A stretch of DNA of 64,000 nucleotides from Eutreptiella sp. 'Long Island Sound 2002' (GCA_964036045.1 OZ038378.1:6138001-6202000); one strand, 5' to 3'; shown: positions 2,091 to 30,520, counted from the stretch's first letter. Program-made: numbers and translations. Notes: generated by a model not told the origin, from the letters alone.

Positions 2091-2299
2091 CCCCCCGGGG
2101 GGGGGGGATCTTTGAACAGTATCTCAGACTTCAAATCACCAGTACACCATCGGTATCACTGCAGGTCCACAGTGCTCCACAGTGCTCCTGCATGCTCTTC
2201 ATACCATGGGACAAGATTGCGAACAGGCAACTACACGGGGCCGCCACTTGAGACATTCCCCAAGTTCGATCAGAGAGTGCAAAGCTGAAACTCCCTACA

Positions 2300-4000: not shown

Positions 4001-4690
4001 CATCACCTCTGCCTTCTTGAGGTCCCATGGTGGGGAGAAATCAACCTAGGAAAGAGTGGATGTGGTGGAAATGAGCAAAAGGAAGTGAAAAAAAAAATGG
4101 AAATGGGTGAAACTAGGTGAAAATCCAAAAATCCCATATCCCCAATGTGGAAGAAGTACCAAAACGTACTCTCAAACAAGAATGATGCCCCCCTAGTATC
4201 ACAAAGTATGGGTCTCTAGTACGGCCACATGCCCAAATCGTTGCACTGCGCTTGCACTATGCTAAGTGCGCCCCCTATGACCACTGTTGGGCAACAACTC
4301 ATGGTACCACCCTTCTACGCCAACCGGGCCTCAGTCACACCCCGCGGTCGCACCGCGCACACCGCGCGTGAGGCACCCTCACAGCAACATACAACGCATG
4401 TGCCAAACATCTGCAGAAGCCACTCAGATACAACTTTAACACAATACATTGCCTCTGCGCCTTAATTCTACGTCGGTACCTCGTCTGTTTTCTGTGTCCA
4501 CTCTACTCGCTCCTTCTCTTACACAACCCTCTCACACTCTCCATATACATGCCGGCTGCTGTCTTGTGGCACCCTACCGGGTGCTGCATCCGACACACTT
4601 TGACCGCAGTACAAGTCCATGCATATTTCCTTGCTCCCACAATGAGCTGTGTGTCTTTCCATTCCCTCACATTTTCGTCCTCACCCCTAG

Positions 4691-8378: not shown

Positions 8379-9154
8379 AGAGCTGGTGTAGGTAGCTGTG
8401 ACTACAGAAAGTACAGGACCCGAAGGGCCATGTACCGCTTATGCCAATCCCTGCTGTCATCCGACATCACAATGCAAAAGCATCTGCCATCGTTTGCAAG
8501 TAAATAAAAAAGAGGAAAGAAAGCATTTTGAGGAGCATAGATCTTGGAGAAAAAACTCGGTGTTGCCCATCCACTGTCAGGTGTCATTGACACCGTCTAG
8601 CGTTTTGGAGCAGGGATAGTACGGAGCATTTTTGCTGTTACCAACAATTTAGGCCTGCCCCTGCAATCGGATCAAACAAATGTGCCAATTCATCACACCC
8701 CTGCCGTGCAGCGCACACACAGCATGGTGCATGCAGCTTCAAGGTTACTGCACCACCGTCATACTTCAGCTGATGACAGTTTCTCAATGGCAGTCTGTGG
8801 CACTTCTTCAAGGTGTTGCCAATGCTCTCGGGTGAGAAGAATGTCTCGTGCGTGCGACTGATGAGTGCACCTGTGTGTGTGGCATGCAGGAGCCTGAAAA
8901 AAGCCTTCTGGAGGAGGAGGAGGAGGAGATGCGGTCCCCCGGTAGGGCGCCCCCGCGGCACATCCCCATGGTGCCCGCCGGCCCTCATCGGTCTGGCCGG
9001 CGACCGAGAGGGGGGTGCTGTCCCGACCCGTCCGGCTAAGCATCATGGCGGCGGCTCTCCTCTTCGTCTCCTCCCCTTGTCCCCTGGCCCGCACAACGCG
9101 CATGCACTCCCGCCCTACACGTTGCTGGATCCCCCCAGGGGCACGGAATGGGGG

Positions 9155-9268
9155 TTTTGGCATGACGCCATGGTGTGATGATCTCGTCTGCAGCTGGCGG
9201 CGCCTACTGGCCGATCGCCATTCGCTGCCCTTCCCTTGGACCCTTTCCCTCCATAGGCGGTGGTGCCC
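9155..9268 (-). mobile_element. Truncated family A retroposon copy with 12-bp TSD
   Basis: TTTTGGCATGACGCC...GGTGGTGCCC flanked by ACGGAATGGGGG at 9143-9154 and 9276-9287 (7-bp filler). Confidence 0.85.
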
Positions 9269-12200
9269 GGACGGAACGGAATGGGGGGCGAGGCAGAGCG
9301 CCGGCTCCACTTCCGGCACGGTCCGCCACCCCCCCACGGGAAAGGGGACGCCGTCTCACGGGTGTGGGCCCTTAGCCCGCCGGGTACTACTGACTGGGCG
9401 GCGTTTGGCCGGCAGGTCTCGGGGGCTTGGTCCGTAGCCCGATCCCCCCCCCCCCCCCGTACCGCACAGCACTCCTGCCGGAGTCATCCGCGCGTTCTGG
9501 CCTGTTGGATCTGTTGGGCCTCTGGCCACCATCATTTGTCCTATGCGCAACCAGATGAAAAGCCAACTCTACTGTGGGAAAGTAGACAGACGCCCACGGA
9601 GTGCCCGTGGTGCTTCATTCGCCAACTAAACCAACGTGAGGCAATGCCACTGCAATGTAATCCTGTGGTGCACCCTTTTACACACCAGCAGTACGTTACA
9701 ATAAGACTGGTTAAGGGCTCGTGTACTACATCATCCGAAAGTATTGGATGGCGCAATATCCTGGTGAATTTGCACGAATGGCTCAAAATTAATACATCGA
9801 AATGCCCCACAGTCTGAGTGTTCATGCGTTGCTGCAATCGGGGGTATACGCTTCTCACTCTGCAAAATCCAACAGCTGCATATGCGCTTTCAGGGTAGGA
9901 TCACACGATCACACGATCACACGATCAAATGATGAAGCAAAGACAGACATGGATGACTCTGATGCCGCAGGACCACAAGAGAAAAATTTGCAGTGCACTG
10001 CTCTTGAGACTTTTAAAGCGGGTGCTTCGTGTTTGTGAAACGGTACGGCTCTGTCCGCAGCCACTTGACCAAACACCAGGGGAGCAGGCCTATACCATGC
10101 AGAGAGGCTCTGAAGGTGGACGGCTATGCACTGTCTGCGTACTGCGTGCACATATGTTGCTGGAACCCATACTGCATATCCATGAAAACTGGGATCTCCC
10201 CACAAGAAAATGCCCCAAACCACAATTCACCATCCTTTTCATCTTCTCCGGAGGCATCCTCATCTGCCCATGACCCATGCTGCCGGTTTATACCCAGAGC
10301 AGAGTGGGGCTTTGAGTGGGTTCCTGATACCTCGACCAGTGATGTGCCAGTGGAGGCATGTTCCCCCTGCATATTTACAAACTTATGGCGTGATATGCAG
10401 TGGCAAACAGACGACAACTTGTGCCTGCACAACCGAGCACGGCAGAGCACAGCATGCGCTGTACCTCATCTGCCTGCAAGTGGCAGCGCACAGGCACAGC
10501 CATCACGTACCCAGGGAGAGTGACCTTCCCTGGACGCTTGCACTCCAGTGGCGCCTGCAAGTATTCCACTTGTTTACAGCAAAAAAAACCTTCTGTTTGT
10601 GTACACGCACAAAATGGTTCCGTAAAATTGGCACGCGCCAGTACCTGCATCATTATCCCAAGCGGCAAGAAAGCCTCAATGGAACACTGTACTGTAACCC
10701 AGACAATGTTGTGGCGACATGTTTTCTATTGCATCAGTTGATGGCAAAGACTCTGTGATGAACGCTGACAGGCTACACTACAACTGTACTAGCTTTTTGG
10801 TTCTGCAGTGACACTTGCGTTCTACTGCGATATTTCGTTTTGTTGCCACATGACTGAAGAAGATGGTACTCTCTCTTGAACGAGCTGTTGGGGCAAGCCA
10901 GCCACCATGCGTCAAAATTCAAATGACTAGTTCCTGCACTACTGACCTTTTTCTTGGCAGAGCCCCACAGTCACAAGGGACGGCAGAACAGCTCCGAGCT
11001 GTGCATCAGACCGGTCTGCCATTGTCTGCATGGTGCGAAACACATATCACTGCAGTGAGACTTCCATCCAATGCAGAAAGAAGTTCCTCAGAGGGTTTTC
11101 GGGGGAATGACAGAGGTGAGAGCAGAGGCTGGTGTCAATTGGTTTTGAAATGTGTTGGGCAAGGGGTTCTTTTCTGTGTTTGTCTTGTCAGTTCGTGCAA
11201 TTTTCTTGCCATCTGGGATGCTTTTTGGCAGAATGTGTGGTGGTCAGGAGCCCCTTTCCCAACACCTTGAGTCCCACCCCTGGTCCAGCCAGCCCATACC
11301 AACGACCTGCAAAACACACCAGTAGTGAGAGGATTGGTCCTGATTCGCGATTTTGTATTACAAACTCGCGAATTGGAGTTGTCAGGTAGTCTCAGGCTAT
11401 CAAGTTGGAGCATTTTTAACCTGAAGCACCTCCTTCCGTCAACACATATTTTCTTGTGTGCCCTGTCGCAGTATTTTCTTCGGCTTCGCTTGCACTGTCC
11501 TGGAATTTCTGGATTGTTCTGGTACCGCAGGCAGGTTTTCAGGCAGGAAAAGTTGGACAAGCCAACAATTGCATTCAGTACTGAGACTGGGGGCTGCAGA
11601 CATCAAGAACTGCATGCACTACCAACAGCCAAAAAAGAGGGGCAGGGGCTGCACGGTTGTGAATATTTCAATGGTGCCGTTCCTATGGGCTGACAAGAGG
11701 ATTGTGTGAGCATTGCATGCGGTCCAGCATGTGACATCCTTTGTCAAGTCAAACGTGCTGCGTCAACGCGCCTGGGCTACGTGACTTCACAACCCTCCGA
11801 CAACAATGCAGCAATTTCCCTTGTTGGGGGCAAAAATTGAGGTCGGTCAGACCAACGGCGACCACATCCATTTGCAAATCAGCGGCGAATGGCTCAGCTG
11901 GGCACTGCTGATCGCAGAGAAGGTACACTGATATGTTGAATACCAGGATGGACTGGCACCTACCTGCTGGTAGCATTGTTGAAAACCGCTTTTTTTTATT
12001 TGCAGAAACGACAACAGAGGAAACAAGGGGCTGGAACTCAGAACACAAAGGGAAGACGAGTGCTGTAAAGGTCGGACTTGCTATTAAGAAACCACTTTAT
12101 AAGGCATGAGGCTCCATTTTGAACTTGATAAGTAAGAAAATGGCCTAGATTTAGAAATGTTTGCGTAGAACACGCTGTGAGGCTCGGCCTTTGAAATATG

Positions 12201-13915
12201 TAGACTGTTGGGCCTCAATCCCAAAAGGTGGTTTCTTATCAACAAGTCCGACCTGTAATGGGGATGTTTGGACACAATCATGATTCACGGCTGCAACAGT
12301 TGGCAAGTTACGGTCTACCATGTACAGTATGGTCGTGCATCTGGGCTGAGGGTGGGGCTGGATGCAACGTAATGCAGAGGCAATGCGGTGCACAAATTAG
12401 GCATGCAGGTCTGTGCACACCAGCGAGCGCTTGCGGGGCATCGAGCAGCCTTGTGCACCGACAGGAATCGAGTACCACGCCGTGACAGGACTTGGCTCCA
12501 CGCACGTTGTCTGCAGATGCTGAACGTGCTCTCTAACATGCCTCTGACAATGTGCTTCTCCGGCAAGCACGGAGGCTAGTGATCGTAACGTTAGCACGGT
12601 GGCTGTGACCACGACTTGTGGTGGTGGGCAGAGTGCGGAACACGCCCCTCATGCCTCTCAAAAAGGGCGCTGCATGCCTGCATGGTCCGGCAAAACGTTG
12701 CAAACCATTTGGACTTGTGACTCAATACCAGCAGGGTTGTGTTGTTGTCTGCGGCTGGCGGCGCCAGTTGGCCGATCGCCACTTACCGCTGCCCCTCCCT
12801 TCCCTTTCCTTGAATGAAGGTGAGCTTGAATGAAGCTTCCTTGAATGAACGAGGCAGGGGTGGGGCAGGGGAAAGATGCAGCATGGCCAAAATTACAGAT
12901 CCCCACCCCATTTGTGTCCCCTGAAGGTCTTGTGCAGTGCAATTTCAACTTTCCGACTGGGCCGGTTGTTGGACAACAATGACCGAACTTTGTTCTTCGT
13001 TGTTGAGGCACAGTGTTTGGATGGAGCACTTGAGACCGTTGATGCAGACTTGGAGGAACGACAGCACAATGGCCAACCCCAGAGAGTTGTGTGTGGTCTT
13101 GGCCCAGGGAAATTGTTTGATCTACAAATGGCTGACAATGGCAGCGCTGTTCAAGATAAGCAACCAATCCAACTCCGAAAAAGGAAACCCAAGAAATGGT
13201 GTTGCAGTGGTATGACTCACACAGACCACTTGGCCAGATGGACAGTGCAGCCACTGGGGAAGAGCAGGGCCGGGAGCGTCGAGAGTGTACGCCGTTATGG
13301 GCCGCGGCGGGGGATGGGGGCATGCATGGCATGACGCCTGAGAGGATTGCTGTCTGAAGCTGCCGCCTTGTGGCCTCTCGGCCCATTGGCAGAAAGGGGT
13401 GGGGGTGGGGGGTTGATAAAAGTGTTCCTGTGCATCCTTCACAAAACAGGCGAGAGGAATGCAGCTGCCAAGTACTTTTGTCAGCCGGTACATTTCAAAC
13501 AGCAGCTTCACGGTGCCCCAAACAAATGGGGGCCGCAACCCAACCCAAACGATGTGCTACCAATCAGGCGGTCATGCAGCAGACGGCAGTTTAAAAAGAA
13601 GATGGATCGCTGATGAAATAAAATGGAGTAGCAACACCCAAACTTTTCTGGTGCTCATTCCCTTCACTTCTTGCTACAAACGGGCCCACTGCAACGTCAA
13701 AACAATCCATCAAACCAGAAAAATTGGATCAACTCCAGTGCAACTACAATGCAACTACAAATCAAGGGTTCCTCCAGCGAACAACTTCCCATGACCGTCG
13801 TCGCCAACTGCCATGCGTCATGGGTCCAATGCTTTTCAACGGATTCCATTCCAAAGCCCGAGCGGAGGTGGGCAGGAGTGGGGGGTTGGAGACAAGCCCT
13901 GGAGAAGGTGTGCAG

Positions 13916-14010
13916 GTGTGTGTGTGTGTGTGTGTGTGTGCAACGCAACAGCAACACAGACTGGCATGCTCAACTGAACATGGACTGGAAAGAATGAGGA
14001 ATGCCCTGAG

Positions 14011-14041
<31 letters not shown>

Positions 14042-14116
14042 CAACAACATCAACACAGCTCAACATCAACACAACCATGCTCAACTGAACATGGACTGGA
14101 AAGAATGAGGAATGCA
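13916..14116. repeat. Direct duplication of a (GT)n-headed unit
   Basis: (GT)n at 13916-13940 and 14010-14036, each followed by a shared ...GCTCAACTGAACATGGACTGGAAAGAATGAGGAATGC. Confidence 0.85.
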
Positions 14117-15385
14117 ACTTTGGGAAAGCCACACGGGCTTTGGCAGCTGTCGGAGTTTAGATGATCTGATGCGCTGATGCGCTGATGAAGAGTTTTGAGG
14201 TCTTCCTCAAAAACTCCTTTTCACAGAATACAGTGGCCAAGCAGAAAATGTAGCAAGTGGCCAAGGGCCCAGCCAATCAGGTGCTTGGTGTCTGGCCATG
14301 CCTGCATGTGAATGAGTGTGAGTGGGCATGCGCAACAAGAGCGTTGGGAACATGCAGGAACTCAAACACAGCATCGCTGCCCAATGCTCATCCGCATAGT
14401 GATGACTGGGGAGCGAGCGCCCGAGCACGCAAGGACATGGCCGGAAGGGTCATCAGGAAACGCTGAATGACCTCGGCACAGCATCGTATGCAGCAGACGG
14501 GGCAGCAGGAGACGAGCAAAAGAGACGCAATATACACTGCGAAATGTGTGCCTTGCAAGGAGTGCACTTGCATGAGAGAGAGAAGAGGCAGAAGTGCAAA
14601 GGAAGGCGGACCAGGGCTGGACGGAACGGAAAATGGGCCAGGCTCCCCTTGTGAAGCGGATGCACAAAGCCCTGGCCACGATGGTATGCTAAGTAAAACC
14701 GCTGATAACTTTCATTGATATTTGGACAACGGTTGGTGGGGATCCTACTGGTTGTCTTGTTGGAGGAGAGACTGGGGAAAGGTGGGAGGAATACACAGTG
14801 TATCTCGCAGATCTTCAAGCCGGCAGAGCACTCCCACGCATTTCGCGATTGCTTGTTTGCAAATTCGGCGCATGCTGCGAAATAATGCAGTCTGAAAAAT
14901 GTGTTCCCACGTGCACTTCAGTATGAACAATCAGAGGAGACGCCATTTCTGTCAACGGCCCTTCACAGCAATATCATACAGCAATGCTGCAAAATTGTAC
15001 CACTGTCCCCTGCAGCATTACTTGAATGCGAGGTGAAGCAATCACTTGAGAGGAAAATTTGGAGTCAGAAGAGAGGAGGGCGGGGGGGCGGGGCATGACG
15101 CCCGCTTGTATTGCTGTCTGAAAAGAGTGGCTTGCTTCCTCATCCCGCTTCTCTTCTCACAGAACAGGTTGGCGTCGTCCGCTTTTTGCGTGTGATGTCG
15201 TTCCTGATCCACACACACACAAAAGCTGCTCTGTGGTGCCTCAATGCGCTCAGTGACTTGTGATTCCAAAATGGCGCTCTGATGAAAGGCGCCATCTGCT
15301 TCTGGATCATCTCTGCACTGTACAATGTCACGAGCCCCAGTTGCGTGTGAGTGTACGGGTGCGTACGTGCCTGTGTGCGTGCACG

Positions 15386-15526
15386 CCTGTGTGTGTGTGT
15401 GTATGTGTATGTGTGTGTGTGTGTGTGACCCAAGAATTTCAATCAAAGCACAAACTGCGAGGTTCAACATTCCTACGTCCTACTTTTCATCAGCGAAACC
15501 ATGAGTCCAGTGTGTGTGTGTGTGTG

Positions 15527-15570
<44 letters not shown>

Positions 15571-15611
15571 TGTGTGTGTGTGTGTGTCTGTGTGTGTGTG
15601 AGTGGGTGGGT

Positions 15612-15667
<56 letters not shown>

Positions 15668-15683
15668 CTGTGTGTGTGTGGGT

Positions 15684-15746
<63 letters not shown>

Positions 15747-15842
15747 GGTGGGTGGGTGTGTGTGGGTGGGTGTTTTGGCATGACGCCATGTGTGTGGGTG
15801 GGTGTGTGTGTGTGTGTGGGTGTGTGTGTGTGTGTGTGTGTA
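15386..15842. repeat. Compound (GT)n/(GGGT)n microsatellites
   Basis: GT runs at ~15386-15426 and ~15509-15842; these generate the spurious HT/VC-repeat ORFs. Confidence 0.95.
15773..15790 (-). mobile_element. 18-bp terminal fragment of family A with 14-bp TSD
   Basis: TTTTGGCATGACGCCATG flanked by TGTGTGGGTGGGTG at 15759-15772 and 15791-15804. Confidence 0.75.
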
Positions 15843-18800
15843 TGCGCGCGCTACGTTTTTAATGGACAGTGTGCAATACCTGTGCAATCCACAAAAAAGA
15901 ACACGGGAGCAACGCAAGAGCACACGTTTGAAATGAGAGTTGCACTTTGAATGGGCAGTTTTGAGTTTAGTCTCCCTTTGGTTGCTGTAGGCAGCCGGTG
16001 CAAAGCCGGGCGGTCCCGGGTTGCTGCATCGCTGGGCGGTCCCTGGGCGAGTATGTGCGAGCGCGAGTACACCATACTGTTCACCACTCGTCGTGGTATT
16101 AGCATCACCTCGATTCCACGAACGTGCTCCCGGCCAACAAAATGGTATTGTATCGCATAAACATATGCTTGCTGCAGGAGCTCGGCGAACAACGGCGTGC
16201 ATGGCGGGTGGGTGGCCGAGTGGTGGTTGCGCGTACACTTTGCACCCCAGCATGGAAGGTGGGGGCGCACCCAGGGGTTGACTTTCAGGGTAACCCAGCC
16301 GCATTCTTCTGGCTTCTCAGCATATTCGACTGTGTGTGTGTGTGTGCGCGCGCGCATGCGTGCGTGCATGTGCATGGCCTAATTTGTGACGTCTGCCACA
16401 AACTGCACAGTCTTCTGGGGCTGCTCACTGTCAAAAGCTTAGCTCGATGGAGCACGGCACTGAGACAAAAACCTCGGGGTTGGCGCCTTACAATTGTGTA
16501 TTTGCATACACGGAAATGCTGGTGCGCGTGTTCTTGCGTGCGCGCGCACATGAGTATTTGTGCAATTGGGAACTGTGCACTTGCAGTGCAGACTTTGTGA
16601 GAAGTGGGCAGCCGGTTGCTGGTATGCTAGAGGGGGGGAATAGAGAGCAGTAAGACGTCGCTTAACGTGTGGTGTATGCCTACAGAGACAATGTTTGTGC
16701 CGCGTGGTTGATGATAGCCTTGATGATAGCTTCTTCACGCGCTCGCAGTGCTCGATGCACGCAAGCGAGCAAGTGGTGCCCATAGTTATGTACACTGATG
16801 TTGTTTCACAACAGAGATGGGGTCCCCACCACTTGCTGCAGGCTCAATGCTGTGAATGGATGCACTCCACCCTCAGCAACGGACATTGGTCAAATGTCAA
16901 TATTGAAAACCGGCATCACCCGATCGTCAATAGTTGCTGACCGGCCAGTTCAGGTGCCCTTCTTTGGTAGGATGGTCCATCCCCAGAGAAGCCAATGTCG
17001 CCATGACGGTCTTCAGCGTAGTTGCATCCATTTCGCAGCTGGGCGAAATACCCAGCGGCGAGGCATCCACTTGGCCAACTGGAGCAGGAAATGCACGATG
17101 CATGTTCTTGGGAGGCCATAATGGCACCGAACTTTGCCTGGCTTGCTGCAACAAGAAAAGGGTGATACTGAAAATCTCGAATTGGGGTGAAGGATGAGAC
17201 TCTGGTTAGGGTTTGCATCGCACTATGCCAGGGGCCAGTCACACCTCATACAAACAGTATTGCCTGCCAATGCCCAATCGCATCTTACACGTACAGCACC
17301 GCCTGCCAGTGCCCCATCATCCTGACATGGGTACCCTTCCGATGGCCTCCCTCCCTCTAGATACTGAATCACAACCTCCTAGATTCCCAGCGGTTCTCAC
17401 CCAATATTTGTGCATCCCCAAACTCTCCATTTTCACTCACCCTCCCCCCCCCAAAACAAGCATCTGTCTCTGTCTGTCTCCTCCAAGAAAAGTCATTACT
17501 CTAGAGGTTTTAGTGGCCGCCATCGGTGTGCCATGCCTTCCCGTGGCCGAATCATGAATTGTCCGAAAAGTGGCATCAGCACCTACCCTTTGTCATTGTC
17601 ATTCCAATCCAGTCCCCGTTGTCACCAGATGGTTTCCTGTTGAAATTTAACGGGCTTTTTGCACGCCGCACAGAAAGAGAAACCCCCCTGTCATACAGGC
17701 GCCTGAAATATTTCCCCAGACTTCTTGGGCGGCTGGTTGTAAGGGGACGGCGATTTGTATGAAACCATTGCATGGACCCAATCAATGGTAGGTGTAAGAA
17801 AGTGTGATGTGAGAAATGTCCTTCGTTGACCCCCAATCTATGTCCATTGTGGATTGCCTTACACACATTCCAAGCAGCACTAAATGCAGAAGCAAGCAAC
17901 AGCGTGGTTGTTATGGCTCCTGTGGCCCCCACCATGACAACGTTCCTTTGCATATGGTTCCAAACATCCTGGCGGAAGCAATGTCCGAGTGTGCAATTCA
18001 ACAGTCACTACTTTGTGTCCCATACTAGCCCTCCCTAGCTCATCAAAAGTAAATTTATTGTGTAAGTAGCCAAAAGGTCGCACACTGCTAATATGAGTAG
18101 GTTGCTGCGGCGCGCTGCAGGGAAGAACCCACAGGCCAAGTGGTCTCAGGGAAGTTCTGCACGCAACTTCATCACCATGCGGGGTGCACAACGCACGCCT
18201 CGCACGCCTTCATCATTCTGGCAACACCATCGCGATGACATATCCGGTTCAAATGCCTTGCTGATACAACACTATCCCAGCAAGACACGTGCACTTAGCA
18301 TACCGTTTGCTTTGGAGCGTGGGAAACACGTGCCGGGTGGAGGCTGCTGCCAATGGCATTTCTGCGCACGAGAAGAAGGTGTGATTAGCAACAGACAGTG
18401 CAATACAATGCCCACTCATCACTGGCGGCGGAACAGAAGAGTAGAGACAGAGGGAGAAGCTTCACAGCATGCAGCCAAAAGTGACAGAGACGGCTCCAGA
18501 AAGAAAAAGCGAGGAGGAACAGAACTGAATGGAGGCGTGGAGGGTTGCCGCAGTTCACCCGTCTCTCTGCTTCCGATCCAGAATGTCTAACCCCCTCCGC
18601 TCGAGATGCCTCCACCCACTGCCAGGATGCTATCCCCCAAGCCTCTGCCGGCATGTCAACTTCTGTTCTCCAAGCTGACAGCTCCCTTAGTAATTGCCTC
18701 CTCTACAACCACCAACGCCAGCAACTCCAGTTGTATCACTGCATGCACCAGCAGCCTCTAGCAGCATGCCCCTGAATGCAGCGTTGCCATCCTGCCAGCC

Positions 18801-19105
18801 CTGCCGAAGGTTTCCACGTATACCCGTCTTGTTGACCATCCGTGAAAGCAGTCGCAGAGTCAGACATCTTCCAGGAGCGTCTGCAGGTGGTGCAGACGTT
18901 GTCATCGGCAGCTTCGTGTGAGCCTAAAGCACAGCAACAATCACCAAACACAGAGTCAACCAATATGCACCACCCCCAGCCAAATCCGTATTTTTGGAAT
19001 CCAAGAGTTGGGCAGAATGTCGGCTGAAAGTAAGCACTGTATCCGGGGCGGTCCGTTACACAGTTTTCGGTAAAAAATCCTGTGGGCACTCCATGTGTTC
19101 AACCT

Positions 19106-19364
19106 TGGTTGGTGGCGGTTGGCGGTTGGCGGTTGGTGGCGATTGGCGGTTGGCAGTTGGCAACTGGCGGTTGGTGGTGGTTGGCGGCGGTTGGTGGTTG
19201 GTGATTGGTGGTTGGTGGCGGTTTGCAGTGGTTGGCGGTTGGCGGTTGGCGGTTGGTCGCCGCTGGCAGTTGGCGGCGGTTGGTAGTTGGCGGTTGGTGG
19301 CGGTTGGTGGTTGGCAGTTGGTGCAGTTGGTGGTTGGTGGGAGTTGGCGGTTGGCGGTTGGTGG
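19106..19364. repeat. Degenerate heptamer-type satellite (GGCGGTT/GGTGGTT)
   Basis: Visible array of GGCGGTT variants, bracketed by GGGGCGGTCC motifs (~19044, ~19371) and ...CCTTAAGGACCG. Confidence 0.9.
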
Positions 19365-19496
19365 TCCCTTGGGGCGGTCCTTAAGGGCAGTCCTTAACAA
19401 AAAAAAATAATCTGGTTCCTTAAGGACCGTGCTGTTGCTGCAGGATTCAACATCTGGAATGGCACGCCCGCGTCCTCTGGGCGAGGGAGGGGGTAT

Positions 19497-19835
19497 GGCA
19501 TGATGCCTCAGTGGATTGATGTCTGAAGCTAGTGGCACCTTTTGGCCTCTCACCAGTTAGACCTTGTCCTTTCCCTGAACCCTGTCCCTCCACAGGCAGC
19601 AGTGCCCAATAGCCTCTCATAACCTAGTGCCCTTAATCTACCTGTCTTGCCCATCCTATCCTCCCTTTCGCTTGGTAAATTGTGCGGACGGAGCCCCAGG
19701 ACTGTCCCTTCCCTTCTTCACTGCTCTGTGGGAGGGCAATGGCCCTCCTCTGAATAGGAGGGGTTGGGGAGGGGGGGTTCACATGACACCCGGGTGGATT
19801 GCTGTCTGAAGCTGGTGACGCCTATTTGCGGAGGA
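19497..19835 (-). mobile_element. Two diverged relatives of family A (GGCATGATGCC and ACATGACACC ends)
   Basis: G-rich run followed by (GG/AC)ATGAYRCC...GGATTGCTGTCTGAAGCT; internal TTGTGCGGACGGAGCCCCAGGACT matches the family A internal motif. Confidence 0.6.
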
Positions 19836-19838
19836 AGA

Positions 19839-21865
19839 GGGGGGGGGGTTTTGGCATGACGCCATGGTGTGATGATCTCGTCTGCAGCTGGCGGCGCCTA
19901 CTGGCCGATCGCCATTCGCTGCCCTTCCCTTGGACCCTTTCCCTCCATAGGCGGTGGTGCCCATCAGCTTCTCACCACCCTTTGACCTTCCTCTTCCTCC
20001 TTGCCCTAACCTTCCCTCTCCCCTCCCCTTTCCCTTCCCTTGGCCTTTCCCTCTGTAGGCCACCGTGCCCATCGGCCTCACCACACTCCTTCCCTTCCCT
20101 TTCCCTTGGTCGGTTGTGCCAACGGAGCCCCCGGACTTGCCCTGTTTCACTTCTCTGCGTCGAGTCCACGCAGAGGAAGGCAAATGCCTTCGCCGTTGGC
20201 CAGGTGCGTCCAAGCGGCCATCCCAAGCCGGCGGTGAGGTACCTCTCCCCAACGGCGGCTGGTGGGCCCTGGGATGGCCACTTGCGGGGTCGTTTCCCCG
20301 ACGGGGGCACATAACAACCTTTCTCCTCCAAGTTCCCGCGCTCAGTCCGACTTTTGGCGAGCGCAACACAAACCCCCTACCCTCTCCTTCATGCCTTTGC
20401 TGCGCGGACGGGGGTTGTGGGGGATGCGTGGGTGCACGGGGGAGTAGGATGTAGTGGGAGACGTGGGGTGGGCCTCTTACCGTCGCTGGCCGCCCACTTC
20501 GTTGCGCGACTCCCTAGGGGGGGGTTTTGGCATGACGCCATGGTGTGATGATCTCGTCTGCAGCTGGCGGCGCCTACTGGCCGATCGCCATTCGCTGCCC
20601 TTCCCTTGGACCCTTTCCCTCCATAGGCGGTGGTGCCCATCAGCTTCTCACCACCCTTTGACCTTCCTCTTCCTCCTTGCCCTAACCTTCCCTCTCCCCT
20701 CCCCTTTCCCTTCCCTTGGCCTTTCCCTCTGTAGGCCACCGTGCCCATCGGCCTCACCACACTCCTTCCCTTCCCTTTCCCTTGGTCGGTTGTGCCAACG
20801 GAGCCCCCGGACTTGCCCTGTTTCACTTCTCTGCGTCGAGTCCACGCAGAGGAAGGCAAATGCCTTCGCCGTTGGCCAGGTGCGTCCAAGCGGCCATCCC
20901 AAGCCGGCGGTGAGGTACCTCTCCCCAACGGCGGCTGGTGGGCCCTGGGATGGCCACTTGCGGGGTCGTTTCCCCGACGGGGGCACATAACAACCTTTCT
21001 CCTCCAAGATCCCGCGCTCAGTCCATCCTTTGGCGAGCGCAACACAAACCCCCTACCCTCTCCTTCATGCCTTTGCTGCGCGGACGGGGGTTGTGGGGGA
21101 TGCGTGGGTGCACGGGGGAGTAGGATGTAGTGGAAGACGTGGGGTGGGCCTCTTACCGTCGCTGGCCGCCCACTTCGTTGCGCGACTCCCTGGGGGGGGG
21201 TTTTGGCATGACGCCATGGTGTGATGATCTCGTCTGCAGCTGGCGGCGCCTACTGGCCGATCGCCATTCGCTGCCCTTCCCTTGGACCCTTTCCCTCCAT
21301 AGGCGGTGGTGCCCATCGGCTTCTCACCACCCTTTGACCTTCCTCTTCCTCCCTGCCCTAACCTTCCCTCTCCCCTCCCCTTTCCCTTCCCTTGGCCTTT
21401 CCCTCCGTGGGCCATGGTGCCCATCGGCCTCACCACACTCCTTCCCTTCCCTTTCCCTTGGTCGGTTGTGCCAACGGAGCCCCCGGACTTGCCCTGTTTC
21501 ACTTCTCTGCGTCGAGTCCACGCAGAGGAAGGCAAATGCCTTCGCCGTTGGCCAGGTGCGTCCAAGCGGCCATCCCAAGCCGGCGGTGAAGTACCTCTCC
21601 CCAACGGCGGCTGGTGGGCCCTGGGATGGCCACTTGCGGGGTCGTTTCCCCGACGGGGGCACATAACAACCTTTCTCCTCCAAGTTCCCGCGCTCAGTCC
21701 ATCCTTTGGCGAGCGCAACACAAACCCCCTACCCTCTCCTTCATGCCTTTGCTGCGCGGACGGGGGTTGTGGGGGATGCGTGGGTGCACGGGGGAGTAGG
21801 ATGTAGCGGGTGACGTGGGGTGGGCCTCTTACTGTCGCTGGCCGCCCACTTCGTTGCGCGACTCC
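19839..21865 (-). repeat. Tandem array of three 676-bp family A terminal units
   Basis: GGCATGACGCC starts at 19853, 20529 and 21205 (exact 676-bp period); units differ by a few SNPs. Confidence 0.95.
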
Positions 21866-22746
21866 CCGGACCACCTCAACATAGGAGCGAGTTGTTGTTG
21901 GGTTGACGGTGGTGTCCCGTGTTGGGTGGAGGTGCGTAGGGCCCCTTGCTGGCCCCCTTCTCCCGGCTTGGTCCGGGCGCTTGACGACGTGGTGCGTCCC
22001 TTTTCTGGTTGAGTCGCTACGCGAGGGAAGGAGTCTCTCCCCTGCTCGCTTCTCAGTGCCAGCACGCTGGGACTTACTGCCGTGGTCACTCCCTTGAGAG
22101 CGCAGCCCCCGGTGGGCTTGCGTTGCCACATCGGGCATCTCGCTGAGGCCCCATTGGACCCCCCGAGAAGCACTCGGTGCACGTGTAGACTTCATTGTTT
22201 TGTTTTGGTCGGTGTTGGTCACCACCCTGGCTAAAAAAGTGCGGGGGTTGCCTTCCCCCTGCCTGTTGTTTGGCCTTGCCCCCTACTCCGCCGGCGAGAA
22301 AGCTCGCTGCGCGTTGTGGTAGCCGGGGCCTTGCCCCCTACTCCGCCGGCGAGAAAGCTCGCTGCGCGTTGTGGTAGCCGGGGCGCATCCAATGGAGACT
22401 GCGGCGCCGTCTCCATTGGGCATGGGTCCAGAGGCCCGTCCACGGCCGTACCTCAGACCACATCGTTGTGCCTTGTTGCTGTATCACTGGGGGCCGCGGC
22501 TCCCCAGTGTGAGTCTCGGTGGCTGGAGGATCTTCTCCTCCCCAGCAGAGCCATGTTGATGGTGTGAGACTCTCCTTTCCATCAGGCATTTTGCTTTCAT
22601 TGTTCTTCCTTCTCCTCCCGGCGCCGGGTTGCCCGTCCCTTGGGTTCCTGGGTCGCTTGGCGCCCGGTCTCAGTCCCTCTTGCTTCAAGGCCTAGGCCAT
22701 GCCATGGTGCGTTCCGGGTCGCGCCTTTGTGCTCGGCACTGCGCTG
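21201..22746 (-). mobile_element. Second long, 5'-truncated family A copy
   Basis: Matches 1-1046, with an internal ~60-bp duplication near 22270-22380; carries the open frame 22225-21065 (VTNTDQ...RSYVEVVRG...). Confidence 0.85.
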
Positions 22747-22774
22747 AACCCCTCCCTGGGGGGGGGGGGGGGTT

Positions 22775-23377
22775 GGCATGACGCCATGGTGTGATGATCT
22801 CGTCTGCAGCTGGCGGCGCCTACTGGCCGATCGCCATTCGCTGCCCTTCCCTTGGACCCTTTCCCTCCATAGGCGGTGGTGCCCATCGGCTTCTCACCAC
22901 CCTTTGACCTTCCTCTTCCTCCCTGCCCTAACCTTCCCTCTCCCCTTCCCTTCCCTTCCCTTGGCCTTTCCCTCCATAGGCCGCAGTGCCCATCGGCCTC
23001 ACACCACTCCTTCCCTTCCCATTCCCTTGGTCGGTTGTGCCAACGAAGAGGAGGGAGAGAAGAGGGGGGGGTTTTGGCATGACGCCATGGTGTGATGATG
23101 TTGTCTGCAGCTGGCGGCGCCTACTGGCCGATCGCCATTCGCTGCCCTTCCCTTGGACCCTTTCCCTCCATAGGCGGTGGTGCCCATCGGCTTCTCACCA
23201 CCCTTTGACCTTCCTCTTCCTCCTTTCCCTAACCTTCCCTCTCCCCTCCCCTTTCCCTTCCCTTGGCCTTTCCCTCTGTGGGCCGCAGTGCCCATCGGCC
23301 TCACCACACTCCTTCCCTTCCCATTCCCTTGGTCGTCTGTGCCAACGGAGCCCCCGGACTTGCCCTGTTTCACTTCT
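22775..23377 (-). mobile_element. Two further truncated family A copies (22775-23044; 23076-23377)
   Basis: Each starts G-run + GGCATGACGCC; the second is flanked by GAGAGAAG+G-run at 23055-23071 and 23378-23394. Confidence 0.85.
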
Positions 23378-24997
23378 GAGAGAAGGGGGGGGGGGGGCAG
23401 ATCTGCTCCTCACTGATGATTGCCTAAAAAATACACCATGCATCGTGACAGGAACTTGGAAGCCCTGTATGATTTCAAAAGCTGCATGTACGTGGTTTGA
23501 TCTGGAGAAGGGGGTGAGACCAAATTCAGGAGAGCTAAGCGAAGGTGTAGGTGGGACCTTTGGTAGACTCACCATGTTTAACACAGCCACCTACCAAGAG
23601 CCATTGGATTGCAACCACTCAAAGGCACATAACTTCAGAAATGAGTGGTGGCTGCTTGTCACCCACCCAGTGCTCACCCTCCTCTCCCCAGACCACCCTC
23701 TCTGGCCATAAAAATGCACACACTTTGGGAAATTGCATGTTCTTGTGGTCGTCAGCAAAAAGGGGTAAGGGTGCCAGCAATTTGTACCCTGTCAATCAGG
23801 TGGTTTGATGGCTCTATCCAACACCCCCTGAACACCCCAAAAGGACCAAGCCTCATATGCAAAATGACATACAACCCAGGACAGAACCTGTGATTCCTGC
23901 TCTGCCCCCAGCCTGATACATCGGGGGAATCTGTCCCCTGCCCCTTGCGTCACTCCTCTGCACCCCATTTCCCTGCCTGTGTCATCCGCCTTTAGTTGGC
24001 CCATTCCAGTCTGCTGCACTACTACGTGGTGTGGTGTCACTGGTCCCTGCTGCGGGTAACTGGAAGCGGAGCACACAGGACAACAGTGCGCGTGTCTGTG
24101 GTCAAGGGATGTGCTTATCTGGGGGGGGTTTTGGCACATCGCCATGGGAGGGGAGGGGGCTGTTTGGACACCCACCCACCCAGAATTTCCAAGACACCCC
24201 CCCCTCTCGTTCCGTAGGCCAAACACTAAGGACATCCCTGCTGCGGTCCCATCCTTCCCCACCCCCACACCCATCCGGGGCCATCATTCTAGTCTTGTGG
24301 CCCTTTCTGCAGCACAAGAGCAGCTGGTGGCATGCATCTATGATAATAGTAGTCATGGATGGCACATCCATCCAAGAAATAAAAACTAAGCCTGGATAAG
24401 AGATGCATCCTGTTCAGGCTTTCAGGTGCAGAGGGCGATTCCAGAAAGGCAGACAGCCGCCATCCCTACGTCGGACAACATCAGCCTTGGCAGGTGACCT
24501 GTGCGAGCGTGTAACAACATGCGGCCCTGGACCTGATGTGGCACTTTACATACTGTCACTGCTGCCCACCGAAGTAGCTGAGGAATAATGGGAGAAAGGA
24601 CTGGAAGCGGGGTCGAATGCTTGTGGCGAACTGTTGACAGGGGTTTCAGAACGCGCTGCCCCCTGCAAAGATGATGCAATCCAATGCTTTCTATGCACGC
24701 CCTCCTGCATACCTGCACACCCTCCCTCACACTAGCATAGCGGAGAAGGTGGCCCACTTCACTGAGCTGTAAAAAGGCTGCGCAGATCTGGAGAGTAGCG
24801 CCGGTCCTATACCAGGGGGAGGGTAGGTAGGTACGGAAGGTGGCAACCATACAATGACAGAACACAGCAGTGGGCTTGTGAGGATCATACGTAGCACATA
24901 ACGCACGCACGAATAATGCCGGGCCCAGAAGTGCGAACTGGCATACCAGATCAGGTGTCCATACCATGGATGGAGAGGTGAGTGGGTTGGGCGGGTT

Positions 24998-25170
24998 GGC
25001 ATGACACCTGGTTATATTGCTGTCTGCAGCTGGTGGGGCCTATTGGCCTCTGGCCACTTACACTTGCCCTTTCCTTGAAGTCTTTCCCTCAACAGGGCGC
25101 CCCCCATCAGCGCTTTGGTGTCACAGTTTGGCGACCTTGTGATGACTCCTCTACCGGCTCACAGTTTAGG
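24998..25170 (-). mobile_element. Diverged relative of family A
   Basis: GGCATGACACCTGG...GCTGTCTGCAGCTGGTGGGGCCTATTGGCC aligns to the family A terminus; right boundary approximate. Confidence 0.55.
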
Positions 25171-26652
25171 GCGGGGGAGGGGAGAGGGGAAACTTCATAG
25201 GAAAACGCCAAAAGGCACAAATCCATTCTGTAGCACATCAAACCTGTTGTAAGCGAGAAAAGGGAAAAAAACAAGGAAAAGAAGGAAAAAAGACACATCA
25301 CAACTATTGGTTTGCCGGCTCGGATGGCACCCTTGTTTTGGAGGACGAGGGGCGCCGAGCCGACAACAGGCTGCCGGGTCACGCTGGTCTGGAATAGAAA
25401 CCTTTGCATCCCCACAGTCAGTGTCGTAGCCTCCTTCATGGGGCATGTGGCAGCTCGCATAAAACTCTAGATCATCGCAATGGGCACGGGTCAACAAAAA
25501 CCACCTCAAAAACCCCCAACCCGGAAACCAGCAATATTGCATACCAGTTCCCAAATTTGGGACAGCCAGTTCCCAGATTGGCCAATGTCAACCACCGGAC
25601 AGACCACCATATCTTGTTCCCAAATTGGGGATTTTTGTCCCCGACATCCCGGGAATCGAACCCTGGTTTTCAAAACGACCGGTCGGGAGAGGTTCGGGAG
25701 CCAGCCTGAGGCTTTCACCCATGCCACAGTCAACCCTGAGGAGTGGTGGAGGCCACAAATTGTGCCCGTGTACACAGCGTACTATACTGCCAGAATGCCA
25801 CCAACACAGCGCCTCCAGAGATGTAGAGGTTCTGAGATCGCCAAAAACCACTCAAGCTGCCTCCCTGGCGTCCATCGATTGCCCGCAGGCTGGCAGGCTT
25901 CACACACAATCGTTGCTGCTAACCATGAAGCTCGGTGGGTGCTGTCCACCACCTTTGATATTGGAGGCAAAACAAAGGGTCTCGCAAAACGTTGACCAAT
26001 TCAATTCCCGTGCATCATCACCTGTGTGTCTCCTCTTTATCCACGGTGGTGTAACGGTGCTGATGCCATTCTTGTGTGCACTCCCGCGTATGCCATGTCT
26101 TGAGTCACAGAAGAGAAACGAAGGGAAACCAAACCTGCGGTTCGGTGGTCCGAAGGAAATGGTCCTCTCCGACTGGGCCTCGCAGGTAGAAAGACAAGCG
26201 GCTTTCACCATCTTTGGCCCAAAAAGCGGGGTCCGTATGGGCTGCCGAAGCTTGTGAGAACTCAGCACATGGCAGCTGTGAATTCCAGAGACTCTGAGAG
26301 CACAGGGGAGCCCAGGGTGAGCTGGAGCTGGAGGAAATTGTGGGCAGCATTCAGTCCGCATCATACATCACAGTCTGGGTCTGCACCTCTGTCTCCCAGC
26401 AAGATCCAACACTAAGTAGAACATTTTTGCGATTTTAGGCGTGGCAATAGTGTCACCCGAAGACCCAGAAGCATGCGATGAACCCTTCGCCAGCACGACT
26501 CAACACGTCTGGAGTCGGGTCCCCATGAGGCCCATTCAACCAGAGGAATAATCTAACCCCCAAAGACCAAAGCGCCCTCCTGATACCCAACGCTTCATAA
26601 GAACTCTGGGGACTGCTACACTGTTGGATACTACACTCCGATTCGGGGCGCA

Positions 26653-28032
26653 TTGCCACTGCTGCCTGCGAAGGGCAAAATGACCCAAAGTCGGACAGTC
26701 GCAAAAATTGTTGATGACGATCCGAAAAGCGGTTGGGGGCAGCGACAGGGGGTAGTGGAGGGACTGGATGCGGTTGGGGGTAAATCCGAAAGTGACAGGG
26801 GGGCCACTGGTCCGCATGGGGGAGAGATCAAGGCCCTTGAAGCATTACATTGGACCCAATATTTGAGGCAGGAAATGGACCTGGCGGCGTGCAGGGGCCT
26901 TGAACTGGTCGCGGCTCACTGTCCCAGGCTCCAGGCTTTCGAAGCTGTGGGCCACCTCTGAGCCGCAGTCGGAAAAGTGGCCAGGCGTGAACGCGCCCTC
27001 GCTGTCTTGAGAGTCCCACGTCAGACTGCTGGAGAGCTCTGAGGCAGACAGGGGCAGCACATGGGTGCGCGGTGGCGCAGCATCATGCAGCGCCTTGCGC
27101 AGGCCCGGCTCCACTTCCTCAGTACCAGTGAAGCGCCGGCGCTGCATCTCTTTTGGAGCAGGTGGTCTTGCGGGTTCTTCCTGCTCTGCGGCAAAACAGG
27201 GAAAAGTGGCAGGAGAGACTGTGCAAATGCAGGGCGGCCGGGCAAAGAGGAGGGGGAACGGATGGGAGAGGGAGCGAGGGAACAAGGATGCAGAGGAGTT
27301 AGGGCGAGGGAGGGCGGGATGCAGGGCATCAAATGAGGCAGACAAAAGGGAAACAGGGAAGAAACTATGCCACCAAAAACGGTCCGCATTCGGCCCCAAA
27401 TGGTGGAGCAAAACTCCAGCAACGGGGTCCAACAAGGAGCCTGTGCTTTGTGTCGAAATCGCTTGGGTTGTCCCTCAACTCTCAAAGGGACCCAACATGG
27501 CCCGCGGAATGGCCCTCGTTGGTGCAGCACTGGTACATGTTCTGTTGTCCTCAGATTGCGCACAGGGGGGCCGGACGCCGATGCTACCACCAACAGAAAG
27601 CAGATCTGCCAAAACCCTGGCATACCAGGCCGATAAGACACAGCAACATCACTGTCATTGACAACTCCTGTCACAGGGGCCGAGGTAGGAACCGCACCGA
27701 TTGAAATCCGTGCTCGCACCATCCGTTACCTGCCCTCTGGCGGCCCACAACAGCAGGACGTTGGGTACCGGCAGCAATGCACACCTGGTTCACCGGGCGC
27801 ACCCCTGGTACCCTCGGGCACTGAAAGACGACTCTGCGCTGGGGTCCAGCATGCTGGGCTGCTCTCCCCACGGAGCGGAGGGGCACGGGTTGTGGGGTCT
27901 GCGATGGTCTGGGTGTCTTCCCACGCATGCTTGTTGCGTGCAATGACGTTGTTAATGGCACGCCGTGTCCCTGCCAAAGACGACCAATGGCGAAATATTG
28001 GAGAGGAGGAGGAGGGAGACTGGAGGGACTGA
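26653..28032 (+). pseudogene. Decayed ORF, possibly transposon gag-like
   Basis: 26653-26961 and 27061-27336 are in one frame with two intervening stops; followed by frameshifted pieces with CALC (27367-27636) and 27658-28032. Confidence 0.3.
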
Positions 28033-28151
28033 GGCTGTGGCCCAGTGACATCCCGCGAGTGCGCCGTGAACCGTTCCCTCCTCCGGACTTTGTGCGGCAA
28101 CGGAGCAGATTGTGGAGCAAGCCATGGTGCAGTCACAGTACAGGGGGGGGG

Positions 28152-28842
28152 TTTGGCATGACGCCATGGTGCACAGGGGGGGTTTTGGCATGACGCCATG
28201 GTGTGATGATCTCGTCTGCAGCTGGCGGCGCCTACTGGCCGATCGCCATTCGCTGCCCTTCCCTTGGACCCTTTCCCTCCATAGGCGGTGGTGCCCATCA
28301 GCTTCTCACCACCCTTTGACCTTCCTCTTCCTCCTTGCCCTAACCTTCCCTCTCCCCTCCCCTTTCCCTTCCCTTGGCCTTTCCCTCTGTAGGCCACCGT
28401 GCCCATCGGCCTCACCACACTCCTTCCCTTCCCTTTCCCTTGGTCGGTTGTGCCAACGGAGCCCCCGGACTTGCCCTGTTTCACTTCTCTGCGTCGAGTC
28501 CACGCAGAGGAAGGCAAATGCCTTCGCCGTTGGCCAGGTGCGTCCAAGCGGCCATCCCAAGCCGGCGGTGAGGTACCTCTCCCCAACGGCGGCTGGTGGG
28601 CCCTGGGATGGCCACTTGCGGGGTCGTTTCCCCGACGGGGGCACATAACAACCTTTCTCCTCCAAGATCCCGCGCTCAGTCCATCCTTTGGCGAGCGCAA
28701 CACAAACCCCCTACCCTCTCCTTCATGCCTTTGCTGCGCGGACGGGGGTTGTGGGGGATGCGTGGGTGCACGGGGTAGTAGGATGTAGCGGGTGACGTGG
28801 GGTGGGCCTCTTACCGTCGCTGGCCGCCCACTTCGTTGCGCG
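28152..28842 (-). mobile_element. Family A micro-insertion plus one ~660-bp unit at the same target
   Basis: GGCATGACGCC at 28155 and 28187; TGCACAGGGGGGG at 28170-28182 and 28844-28856; ACAGGGGGGG also at 28140-28149. Confidence 0.88.
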
Positions 28843-28849
28843 TTGCACA

Positions 28850-30520
28850 GGGGGGGGAGGGGTTTCGTGTGGGGACTATTTCGCAGCAGTAAATTTCGCA
28901 GCGGGAAACTTTGCGGAGGTCGCTGAAAAAGGCGTGGGAAATTTCGCGGATCATCTCCAGTGTACCGCTGTGCATGGCTTGGTGGACCCAAAAACTCATG
29001 GTTTATTTTGCCAATTGCCAAACAGGAGTTGAGCCGCCTCAGGCGCCACTCACTATGCAGCGGAGACCCATCTGCCACACCCTGCCAGTGATAAGGGCCT
29101 AGTTTGCTCAGGCCCTCACAGGCGCCTAAGTTTTGACAGTGGAATTTGACTTACCCCTGGTAAGAGCAACCGCAACTCTCTGCACAGGAGCTCCTGGGCC
29201 GTGCTCTTTTCTCTTTGTTGGCTGCAATTTTTGTGTGGCCTCTTTTCAACTGACATGAATAAATGAACGTTCATTTCAAGGAACATGAAAGGAAGGGAAG
29301 TAGAGAGGGAAAGATAGGGCGAGAAGGAAGAGGAAGGACACAGGGTGGTGAGAGGCCGATGGGCACCACCGGCTATGGAGGGAAAGGGTTCAAGGGAAGG
29401 GCAGCGAATGGCGATCGGCCAATAGGCACCACCACGAGAACAACACGATAAATACAGGCTTAGGGGTTGGTTTGCCAGCATCTGAGTGACAGGGTCACCC
29501 CTCGCAGGGGACCTGTAGAGGTCTTGGGGGGGATGGACAAAAAGGTGGGGGGGTACAAATGCACGGCATGATAGAGCCTTGCCACACAGAAGTGCCAAAA
29601 GCACCAAAGAGCAAATTGTGGCCCCTACAACAAGTGTGGGAAGTTTTTGCGGAGGCCCCCAGGATTTGTGTGGGGGGGTCGAAGGGGAGGGGGGGTTGTG
29701 CGGGAGGGGGGCCGTTTGAGCCCCTTTCCCAGACCTGCCACCCCCCCGTGTGACATTCCGTCTGGTTGTTGCTCCTTTACGGGGCCCTGGACGGTCACCC
29801 GTTCTTCCCTTCGCTTGTTGCGTCGGGTCGCTACTTTCTGTCGGCCGCTGCGGCCGGTGCTCTTGCTGGTGTTGTTTCCGCGTTCGCTGAGCCCAGTAGT
29901 TGGCGTGTTGGGACTGTGCTGAATGTGGCATGGTGTGCCGTTTGCGTGTCAGCGGCGCCCAATAGGTGGCATATTGAGGATGTGCTGGTTGTTGCCGGGG
30001 TCGTTTGACTGTTTTTGCTGTCCACACACCTCTGTCCACAGGCCGTCCATAGCCTGCCTCGCTGTGTTTCTGTGCGGCCCAGGTGCCCTGTTCCTCCACG
30101 CCTTCCGCTGCTTGACGTATAAGCCTTGAAGGCGGGGGGGTTTTGGCATGACGCCATGGTGTGATGATCTCGTCTGCAGCTGGCGGCGCCTACTGGCCGA
30201 AGGCGGGGGGGGGGGGGGGTGGCATGTTCCGTTGGACCCTTTCCCTCAATAGGCGGTGGTGCCCTTCAGCCTCTCACCACCATGCGTCCTTCCTTTCTCC
30301 TTGCCAAATCTTTCCCTCTCTACTGCCCTTTCCTTTCCCTTGGTCAGTTGCCAACGGAGTCCCCGGACTTTCCCTGTTTCACTGCTCTGCAACAGCCCTC
30401 GCCGTTGGCCAGGTGCGTCCCAGCGGTCATCCCAAACCGAACAACAAGAGGGGGGGGTTTTGGCATGACGCCATGGTGTGATGATCTCGTCTGCAGTGCA
30501 AGAGGGGGGGGGGGGGTTCT
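28850..30520. repeat. Nested cluster of several interspersed repeats, including family A copies
   Basis: AATTTCGCRG motif repeats (28875-28950); inverted diverged family A piece (~29340-29430); copies at 30141-30198 (TSD GAAGGCGGGGGGG 30128-30140/30199-30211) and 30458-30496 (TSD CAAGAGGGGGGGG 30445-30457/30499-30511). Confidence 0.75.

Follow-up and report, generated by a model that had tools for sequence, protein, structure and literature searches.

What has inserted time after time beside runs of G in a 64,000-nucleotide stretch of the genome of the euglenid Eutreptiella sp. 'Long Island Sound 2002' (GCA_964036045.1 OZ038378.1:6138001-6202000; the whole stretch is called the window here), and how are such sites chosen? 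The window sits on a 201-Mb contig of a 2.28-Gb genome and carries a set of repeats that a first-pass annotation of the sequence had described as a retroposon family, inserted by target-primed reverse transcription from an RNA whose C-tail primes on nicked G-runs. We propose instead that the repeats are, with high probability, mostly truncated copies of one autonomous 8,712-bp Penelope-like element (PLE) of the Chlamys type, which inserts at G-runs. The nick in the G strand, the target-primed synthesis and the class of the element are well supported, and pairing between the G's of the primer and five C's in the template (C5) is, as we infer it, about evenly poised.

The fixed end of the repeats, read on the sense strand, is ...CCATGGCGTCATGCCAAAA, a unique sequence ending in A4. 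As annotated, the sense strand is the minus strand of the window, and the copies share a fixed 3' end with variable 5' truncation. With up to two mismatches, GGCATGACGCCATGG, the 15-mer that opens each copy, has 13 matches in the window, where 0.25 are expected: 11 are true copies, all on the plus strand from 9159 to 30476, one at 54372 is a chance match, and one at 61839 (minus) belongs to a second family. The copies of the window are 18, 39, about 52, 114, 273, 306, 660, 666, 666, 1546 and 2,533 bp long, in line with the annotated description of starts at a G-rich run plus T's and of scattered endpoints. Genome-wide, the exact 17-mer TTGGCATGACGCCATGG occurs 1,614 times, with GGGG and two to four T's directly before it in 1,295 cases (80%), and when up to two mismatches are allowed, a 25-mer from this end has 1,540 matches. 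The family is young, its copies being mostly 96-100% identical. From 77 fetched loci (308 kb) we obtained 79 copies with the fixed end. In 76 of them a run of 4-19 G, with a mode of 5, adjoins that end; runs of 4-5 G are both the shortest and the most frequent there.

Flanking duplications were sought in this sample by asking how much of the non-G suffix of the upstream flank is found again before GGG at the opposite end, the longest such match being kept; copies with identical flanks (11 of 79) were removed beforehand, and 66 unique copies were used. At least 5 unique bases (5-14) plus the G-run are repeated at the far end in 22 of the 66 (33%), compared with 1.4% when flanks are permuted between copies, so that the duplications lie far above this control. 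In total they measure 7-22 bp, with a median of 13 bp, and such regular duplications imply two staggered cuts. When the 58 copies with both ends in hand are considered, 22 have a clear duplication (a unique part of at least 5 nt, then the G-run) and 11 a weaker one, with 3-4 unique bases. As to truncation, 49 of the 66 copies are at most 700 bp long, with a median of about 370 bp. All six duplications annotated in the window are found at their places, and they end in the G-run, which is what a nick in the G strand should produce; this upholds the proposal of target-primed reverse transcription. Among the 22 clear cases, the far-end G-run exceeds the run on the element side in 15 and falls short of it in 2, a pattern that fits a nick within the run and speaks against an RNA tail as the source of added G's.

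These same data bear on the view that there is no targeted insertion at all, the arrays having arisen by unequal recombination and the flanking repeats by chance in low-complexity G-rich DNA. Three copies spaced by 676 bp at 19849-21200 could indeed be a local duplication, and the shared flanks of the 11 removed copies point to segmental duplicates. However, the repetition of 5-14-nt unique non-G parts in a third of the copies, set against the permuted control, together with the presence of dispersed copies on many chromosomes that differ both in their flanks and in their truncation points, makes this view scarcely credible.

The element behind these fragments is represented by one complete 8.7-kb copy that was read, at C1:165.84 Mb, which extends over 8,712 bp from the 5' motif to the terminal A4 and includes a 3' untranslated region of 1.67 kb. 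Elsewhere, successive ends are spaced by 8,634 and 8,705 bp, in agreement with this length. The longest copy of the window, annotated as exceeding 2000 bp, is present but is itself truncated: the 2,533-bp insertion has its own duplication, and other copies extend beyond its endpoint. Its distal 2,089 bp occupy positions 1-2089 (minus strand), with the fixed 3' end 443 bp before the window, and comprise the last 304 codons of the polyprotein (J-domain and C-terminal domain) and part of the 3' untranslated region. The downstream duplication, C7 then G11, lies at 2090-2107, and its upstream counterpart, C8 G7, just before the window. A copy of about 7.0 kb is likewise truncated, with a duplication of its own. 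The genome contains 52 matches to a 25-mer of the 5' end, against the 1,614 3' ends; about 3% of the copies thus reach the 5' end and about 97% are truncated.

The polyprotein has the predicted order N-terminal GIY-YIG nuclease, telomerase-like reverse transcriptase (RT), JAB deubiquitinase, PHD-like finger and J-domain. In the C1:165.84 Mb copy, a 1,812-codon open frame contains JAB/MPN+ (H-x-H-x7-S-x2-D) and DnaJ domains by Pfam, and the frame runs 544 codons further upstream. These upstream codons match the N-terminal regions of relatives (tblastn E-values down to 1e-25). On the 8,712-bp map the nuclease spans roughly nt 759-1100, and nt 1603-3492 hold the RT. Behind the nuclease comes a CxC motif, seen as SCNC in the translation of a second long copy and aligning with the CxC of the relatives. 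The domain that follows the J-domain, in the last 223 codons (L035:7901-8569, equal to window 1161-1830, minus strand), has no match in a Pfam search.

Recognition of the nuclease comes from relatives and from structure prediction. Pfam GIY-YIG matches 9 of the 12 members of the alignment, the C1:165.84 Mb copy not being among the 12, and the core residues G, Y, Y-x-G, R, E and N are invariant in the alignment and kept in the element. The best fold matches of the nuclease model (predicted local distance difference test, pLDDT, about 90 over residues 10-100) are the GIY-YIG domains of I-TevI and UvrC. No Cys pair lies between the GIY and YIG motifs in the element or its aligned relatives, that is, there is no CCHH zinc finger. 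For the RT, a search of the element protein gave no RVT match in Pfam, and phmmer found nothing among the PDB sequences. A 700-residue piece has, in turn, 770 relatives in a representative protein library, and in some distant relatives a GIY-YIG domain recognized by Pfam precedes the RT. The AlphaFold model of the RT, built with 42 sequences, has a pLDDT of 88 and a predicted template modelling score (pTM) of 0.86; its top 15 PDB matches are all telomerase RTs (E-values 5e-9 to 4e-6), telomerase RTs precede group II intron RTs in the fold list, and no LINE (long interspersed nuclear element) RT is listed. PLE-type motifs are visible in the consensus of the RT alignment. Judged by its relatives and its modelled fold, the RT is of the telomerase-related type.

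These features decide against the annotated class. A LINE- or SINE-type (short interspersed nuclear element) retroposon, with a 3' oligo-C RNA tail pairing with nicked G-runs and a separate partner encoding the RT, would explain why the 3' end is fixed and the 5' end truncated, and why the duplications end in G. Yet the copies are pieces of an autonomous element that encodes a GIY-YIG nuclease and a telomerase-like RT; no APE, restriction-like endonuclease or LINE-clade RT is found by Pfam in the 1,812-codon frame; telomerase comes first among the RT folds; and there is neither a poly(A) nor a simple-repeat tail. In addition, the G-run on the element side is shorter than the intact run in the 15 of 22 cases given above, and full copies occur in partial tandems, as in PLEs. 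We therefore consider a LINE or SINE origin very improbable, and the LINE-type reading is replaced by that of a PLE. An RT-encoding element with the same 3' terminus, which the annotation had called for, does exist, but it is the same element, and the copies are its own truncated forms and not a separate non-autonomous retroposon. The proposed logic is the same as that of L1-type LINEs, in which a nicked homopolymer pairs with a homopolymer of the RNA; heavy 5' truncation and duplications of variable length are also shared with the present element. L1 differs in its APE nuclease, in its use of T-runs with a poly(A) tail added after transcription, and in its unrelated RT clade.

How the G-run is recognized may be approached through the arrangement of the full copies. 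The flank beside the fixed end is identical in three sampled copies and turns out to be the 5'-terminal sequence of the full element. The exact junction CATGCCAAAA-CCCCC-ACATACCACGCC... (5' end ACATACC...) occurs 46 times, on more than 20 contigs. In other words, the 3' end (...CCAAAA) and exactly five C directly precede 46 of the 52 5' ends, in contrast to the target G-runs, whose length ranges between 4 and 19. The composite at C1:165.84 Mb consists of a partial copy of 803 nt, then C5 and the full copy, with one duplication (C-run + AACAGG) around all of it, and at C1:5.19 Mb a three-unit tandem has one flanking duplication (C9 + GCG). Both composites were inserted as single pieces. The tandem units of the latter (C1:5191084-5201655; L031, L036) are of 5,284 bp and represent an internal-deletion derivative that has lost nt 1177-4517, including the RT, and retains the nuclease part and the C-terminal domains. 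The invariant AAAA-CCCCC-5' end junction means that a transcript spanning it has CCCCC right after the start of reverse transcription. The C-tail and G-target scheme of the annotation thus survives in a modified form, with CCCCC present in the likely template at the 46 tandem junctions, after ...CCAAAA; an addition of G's from a tail does not agree with the usually shorter run on the element side. We also considered telomere mimicry, as the junction GGGGTTTTGG resembles a G4T4 repeat, and rejected it: the genome holds 56,603 TTAGGG 24-mers and 3 G4T4 24-mers.

In the mechanism that we propose, the GIY-YIG nuclease would nick the G strand within a run, and the 3' G's would prime reverse transcription on a transcript spanning the tandem junction. 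Synthesis would begin at the A4 immediately 5' of the built-in C5, and pairing of the primer G's with C5 would probably help to set both the start point and the target. Frequent early abort of synthesis could give the 5' truncations, and a second cut about 13 bp away the duplication. Pairing with C5, followed by extension across A4, would account for the constant order of G-run, T4 and element, for the minimum of 4-5 G, and for occasional starts 1-2 bases in. Each insertion recreates a G-run beside the element end and so a new target, which explains head-to-tail arrays and new copies in front of old ones. Cases of the latter are the nested pair at 28143-28857, the array of five copies at 19839-23397 and, at 30141-30192, a copy standing before an older, diverged one. 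That the choice of target is partly encoded in the RNA, the junction C5 serving as an inbuilt guide for pairing with the nicked G-run at its 3' end, is a possibility to which we give somewhat less than an even chance.

A competing explanation keeps the same element and target-primed reverse transcription, and assigns the choice of G-runs to the GIY-YIG nuclease alone, with its CxC linker; the start would be internal and defined by the protein, with no pairing, and C5 would be a copied remnant of the target. We regard it as a genuine contender, if still somewhat short of probable. In its favour, the CxC domain may direct the nuclease to repeats, as suggested by Craig et al. (PMC8557442). Moreover, a second related family of about 250 bp lies at 61593-61876 (plus strand); its minus-strand reading gives G17 then GCACGAAGCCATGG, with (TG)n+Gn flanking repeats, and it shares blocks of sequence with the main family. 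This second family retains the G-run despite a different end sequence, and has no T4. On the other hand, the finding of exactly five C at 46 junctions, compared with target runs of 4-19, speaks against C5 as a target remnant. The commonest and shortest run of 4-5 G fits about five pairing bases, although a requirement of the nuclease could give the same.

Several observations weigh against the reading of a G-run-targeting PLE guided by C5, and the second family, with its G-run and no T4, is one of them. The number of T's at the junction varies among the 79 copies (four in 54, three in 18 and two in 7), a variation that would also suit the nuclease acting alone, and an odd A or C precedes the T's in 8 of them; homopolymer lengths are error-prone in assemblies. 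The sample comes from three chromosomes and is partly clustered. Of the copies with both ends in hand, 17 of 58 have nothing more than a G-run at the far junction, and a duplication is absent in 8 of 58. In the C1:165.84 Mb copy the frame is interrupted by a frameshift near codon 590, and a clear start codon is missing from the first 0.75 kb. As for RNA, the last few hundred bases of the element are present in estuary metatranscriptomes (Logan contigs from four RNA or probable-RNA runs), with a depth that climbs toward the 3' end, like the genomic copy profile; in these assembled contigs, the only RNA data, the flanks are mixed. A 27-mer of the element end has no exact match in public metagenome contigs. 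PAc of Anolis, the sole PLE tested in vitro, begins copying at a site that shares no homology with the DNA it cuts (PMC11167929), so that pairing is not required in the class, which again would favour a start set by the protein.

The last point to be weighed concerns the nuclease itself. In the readable full-length copy, a His conserved in relatives is replaced by Arg, and the nuclease domain alone falls below the Pfam threshold. Such divergence might be taken to indicate that insertion does not depend on the nuclease and takes place at pre-existing breaks or replication intermediates in fragile G-runs, as endonuclease-deficient PLEs do at chromosome ends; G/C runs of at least 7 are very common, with 60 in 64 kb where about 10 are expected. 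Nevertheless, the regular duplications of 7-22 bp with the two staggered cuts that they imply, the conservation of the catalytic Y, R, E and N and of the GIY-YIG fold, the retention of the nuclease part even in the RT-deleted 5.3-kb derivative, and the interstitial position of the copies in a host whose telomere repeat is TTAGGG leave nuclease-independent insertion as a most unlikely course of events.

With the element taken as a PLE, its place among known families can be defined. A telomerase-related RT, a GIY-YIG domain in the same frame, and partial tandems with 5' truncation are all PLE features, and the hammerhead of the canonical clades is missing: Rfam has no match to the full element (E-values up to 1) or to window 9000-31000, with no hammerhead or other known RNA. 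Since most Chlamys and Naiad elements have no hammerhead, this absence does not exclude that clade. The nuclease lies N-terminal to the RT with CxC between them, as in Naiad and Chlamys, and three further traits indicate Chlamys: the lack of CCHH within the nuclease, the non-animal host and the bias for (C)n, found in 76 of the 79 sampled copies and 80% of the 1,614 ends. Chlamys elements were described as having (CA)n and (C)n targets, pseudo-long terminal repeats, frequent 5' truncation and mostly no hammerhead (Craig, Yushenova, Rodriguez and Arkhipova 2021, PMC8557442). The present element shares with them the succession of GIY-YIG nuclease without CCHH, CxC linker and telomerase-like RT, together with 5' truncation, pseudo-long terminal repeats, the lack of a canonical hammerhead and (C)n targeting (PMC8557442); its 8,712 bp are in or slightly above their length range of 3.3-8.2 kb (PMC8557442). 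It differs in its euglenid host, the hosts in the defining paper being green algae, Chara, spike mosses and a slime mould (PMC8557442), in its clear duplications, which were often not discernible there (PMC8557442), in its invariant C5 tandem junction, and in a long C-terminal extension with JAB, PHD-like finger, KOW-like modules and J-domain. The closest parallel for such an extension is Chlamys-1_cBra of Chara braunii, with an open reading frame of about 1,800 codons and a C-terminal extension bearing deubiquitinase-like (Josephin-like) and Cys/His-rich motifs (PMC8557442). The deubiquitinase of our element is, in contrast, a JAB/MPN+ metalloprotease, and it has a J-domain, none being reported for the Chara element.

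Comparison with two other systems is of value for the mechanism. Poseidon PAc resembles the present element in its tandem transcript template, in reverse transcription that starts at adjacent internal sites and not at the RNA 3' end, and in having a GIY-YIG nuclease (Frangieh et al. 2024, PMC11167929). Its nuclease is C-terminal and cuts AT-rich DNA, and its start is non-homologous (PMC11167929), whereas here the target is a G-run and five C lie beside the start, so that homology is available. Athena and Coprina elements (Gladyshev and Arkhipova 2007), insofar as they are summarized in PMC8557442, also have a telomerase-like RT, and a 3' region complementary to a G-rich primer, to which it is thought to anneal. 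In that same summary they have no nuclease, reside at chromosome ends with reverse-complement telomeric repeats, carry hammerheads and make no duplications, unlike the present element, which has a nuclease, is interstitial with duplications, and has a C5 unrelated to the TTAGGG repeat of the host; G4T4 arrays are almost absent from the genome.

As (C)n-targeted insertion is already known for Chlamys (PMC8557442), the novelty is reduced accordingly. What is new is the readable duplications, the evidence for a nick inside the run, the invariant C5 junction offering homology, and the accessory module. Target choice and the start of copying are poorly understood in PLEs, of which one has been studied in vitro, and a young, abundant family of about 1,600 ends, with readable duplications and an invariant junction, offers a model, both simple and testable, of the bias for microsatellites and homopolymers in Naiad and Chlamys, a clade that is here extended to euglenids. 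If the pairing with C5 is true, the element would be the first PLE whose internal initiation relies on homology between primer and template, its homopolymer specificity would be encoded in the template, and altering the junction could in principle retarget the element.

The accessory module has counterparts in relatives. The closest RT relatives (P0001, P0003-P0009, P0040, P0043, P0047, P0049 and P0055) are 41-50% identical, and in most of them Pfam finds a deubiquitinase after the RT, mostly OTU, with UCH in P0043, compared with JAB in this element; none was detected after the RT in P0055. Several also have a PHD finger, a DnaJ domain or both. By domain prediction, a single deubiquitinase slot is occupied by three unrelated folds (JAB, OTU and UCH), beside a J-domain of the Hsp70-recruiting kind. 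A retroelement with a deubiquitinase and a J-domain points to manipulation of host protein turnover and chaperones.

The remaining copies of the window, all read on the minus strand unless stated, illustrate the range of truncation. The 114-bp copy (9155-9268, within 9143-9287) lies between direct repeats ACGGAATGGGGG at 9143-9154 and 9276-9287. The 18-bp copy (15773-15790, within 15759-15804) sits within a (GGGT)n/(GT)n tract and has repeats TGTGTGGGTGGGTG on either side; its target is G-rich, with no pure G-run. The head-to-tail array at 19839-23397 has a G-run of 8-15 before each of its five copies: two of 666 bp (19849-20514 and 20525-21190), one of 1546 bp (21201-22746) with a 55-bp internal duplication, one of 273 bp (22773-23045) and a last one of 306 bp (23072-23377) flanked by GAGAGAAG+Gn. 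The nested pair at 28143-28857 consists of an 18-21-bp copy (28152-28169) and a 660-bp copy (28183-28842), the latter flanked by TGCACAGGGGGGG at 28170 and 28844. Further on, the copy of about 52 bp (30141-30192, within 30128-30219) has GAAGGC+Gn flanks and was inserted in the G-run heading an older, diverged relative (30220-30440), which is about 82% identical and starts directly after the G-run. The 39-bp copy (30458-30496, within 30445-30516) has CAAGAG+Gn flanks. A fragment of a diverged relative, 87-90% identical, lies in the opposite orientation at 29287-29434 (plus strand).

Some minor observations may be added. Truncation recurs near element position 660-669, in copies of 660, 666, 666 and 669 bp (window 19849-21200 and 28183-28842; C1:187906768). 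In the array with 676-bp spacing, the truncated end ...GACTCCC abuts T+Gn, and CTCCCT+Gn is found again after the third copy; this recurrence suggests joining by microhomology at the 5' junction or a local duplication. Telomere-type repeats are abundant within chromosomes, the (TTAGGG)4 24-mer counted above forming many interstitial arrays along C1. Part of the 60 G/C runs of the window, whose expected number was derived from base composition, belong to element copies, and with so many runs potential targets are plentiful. Finally, the G-runs at window 24121-24136, 15082-15099 and 19771-19790, followed by TTTTGGCA, GGGGCATGACG or TTCACATGAC, are candidates for extremely short or decayed copies, either of this family or of a related one.

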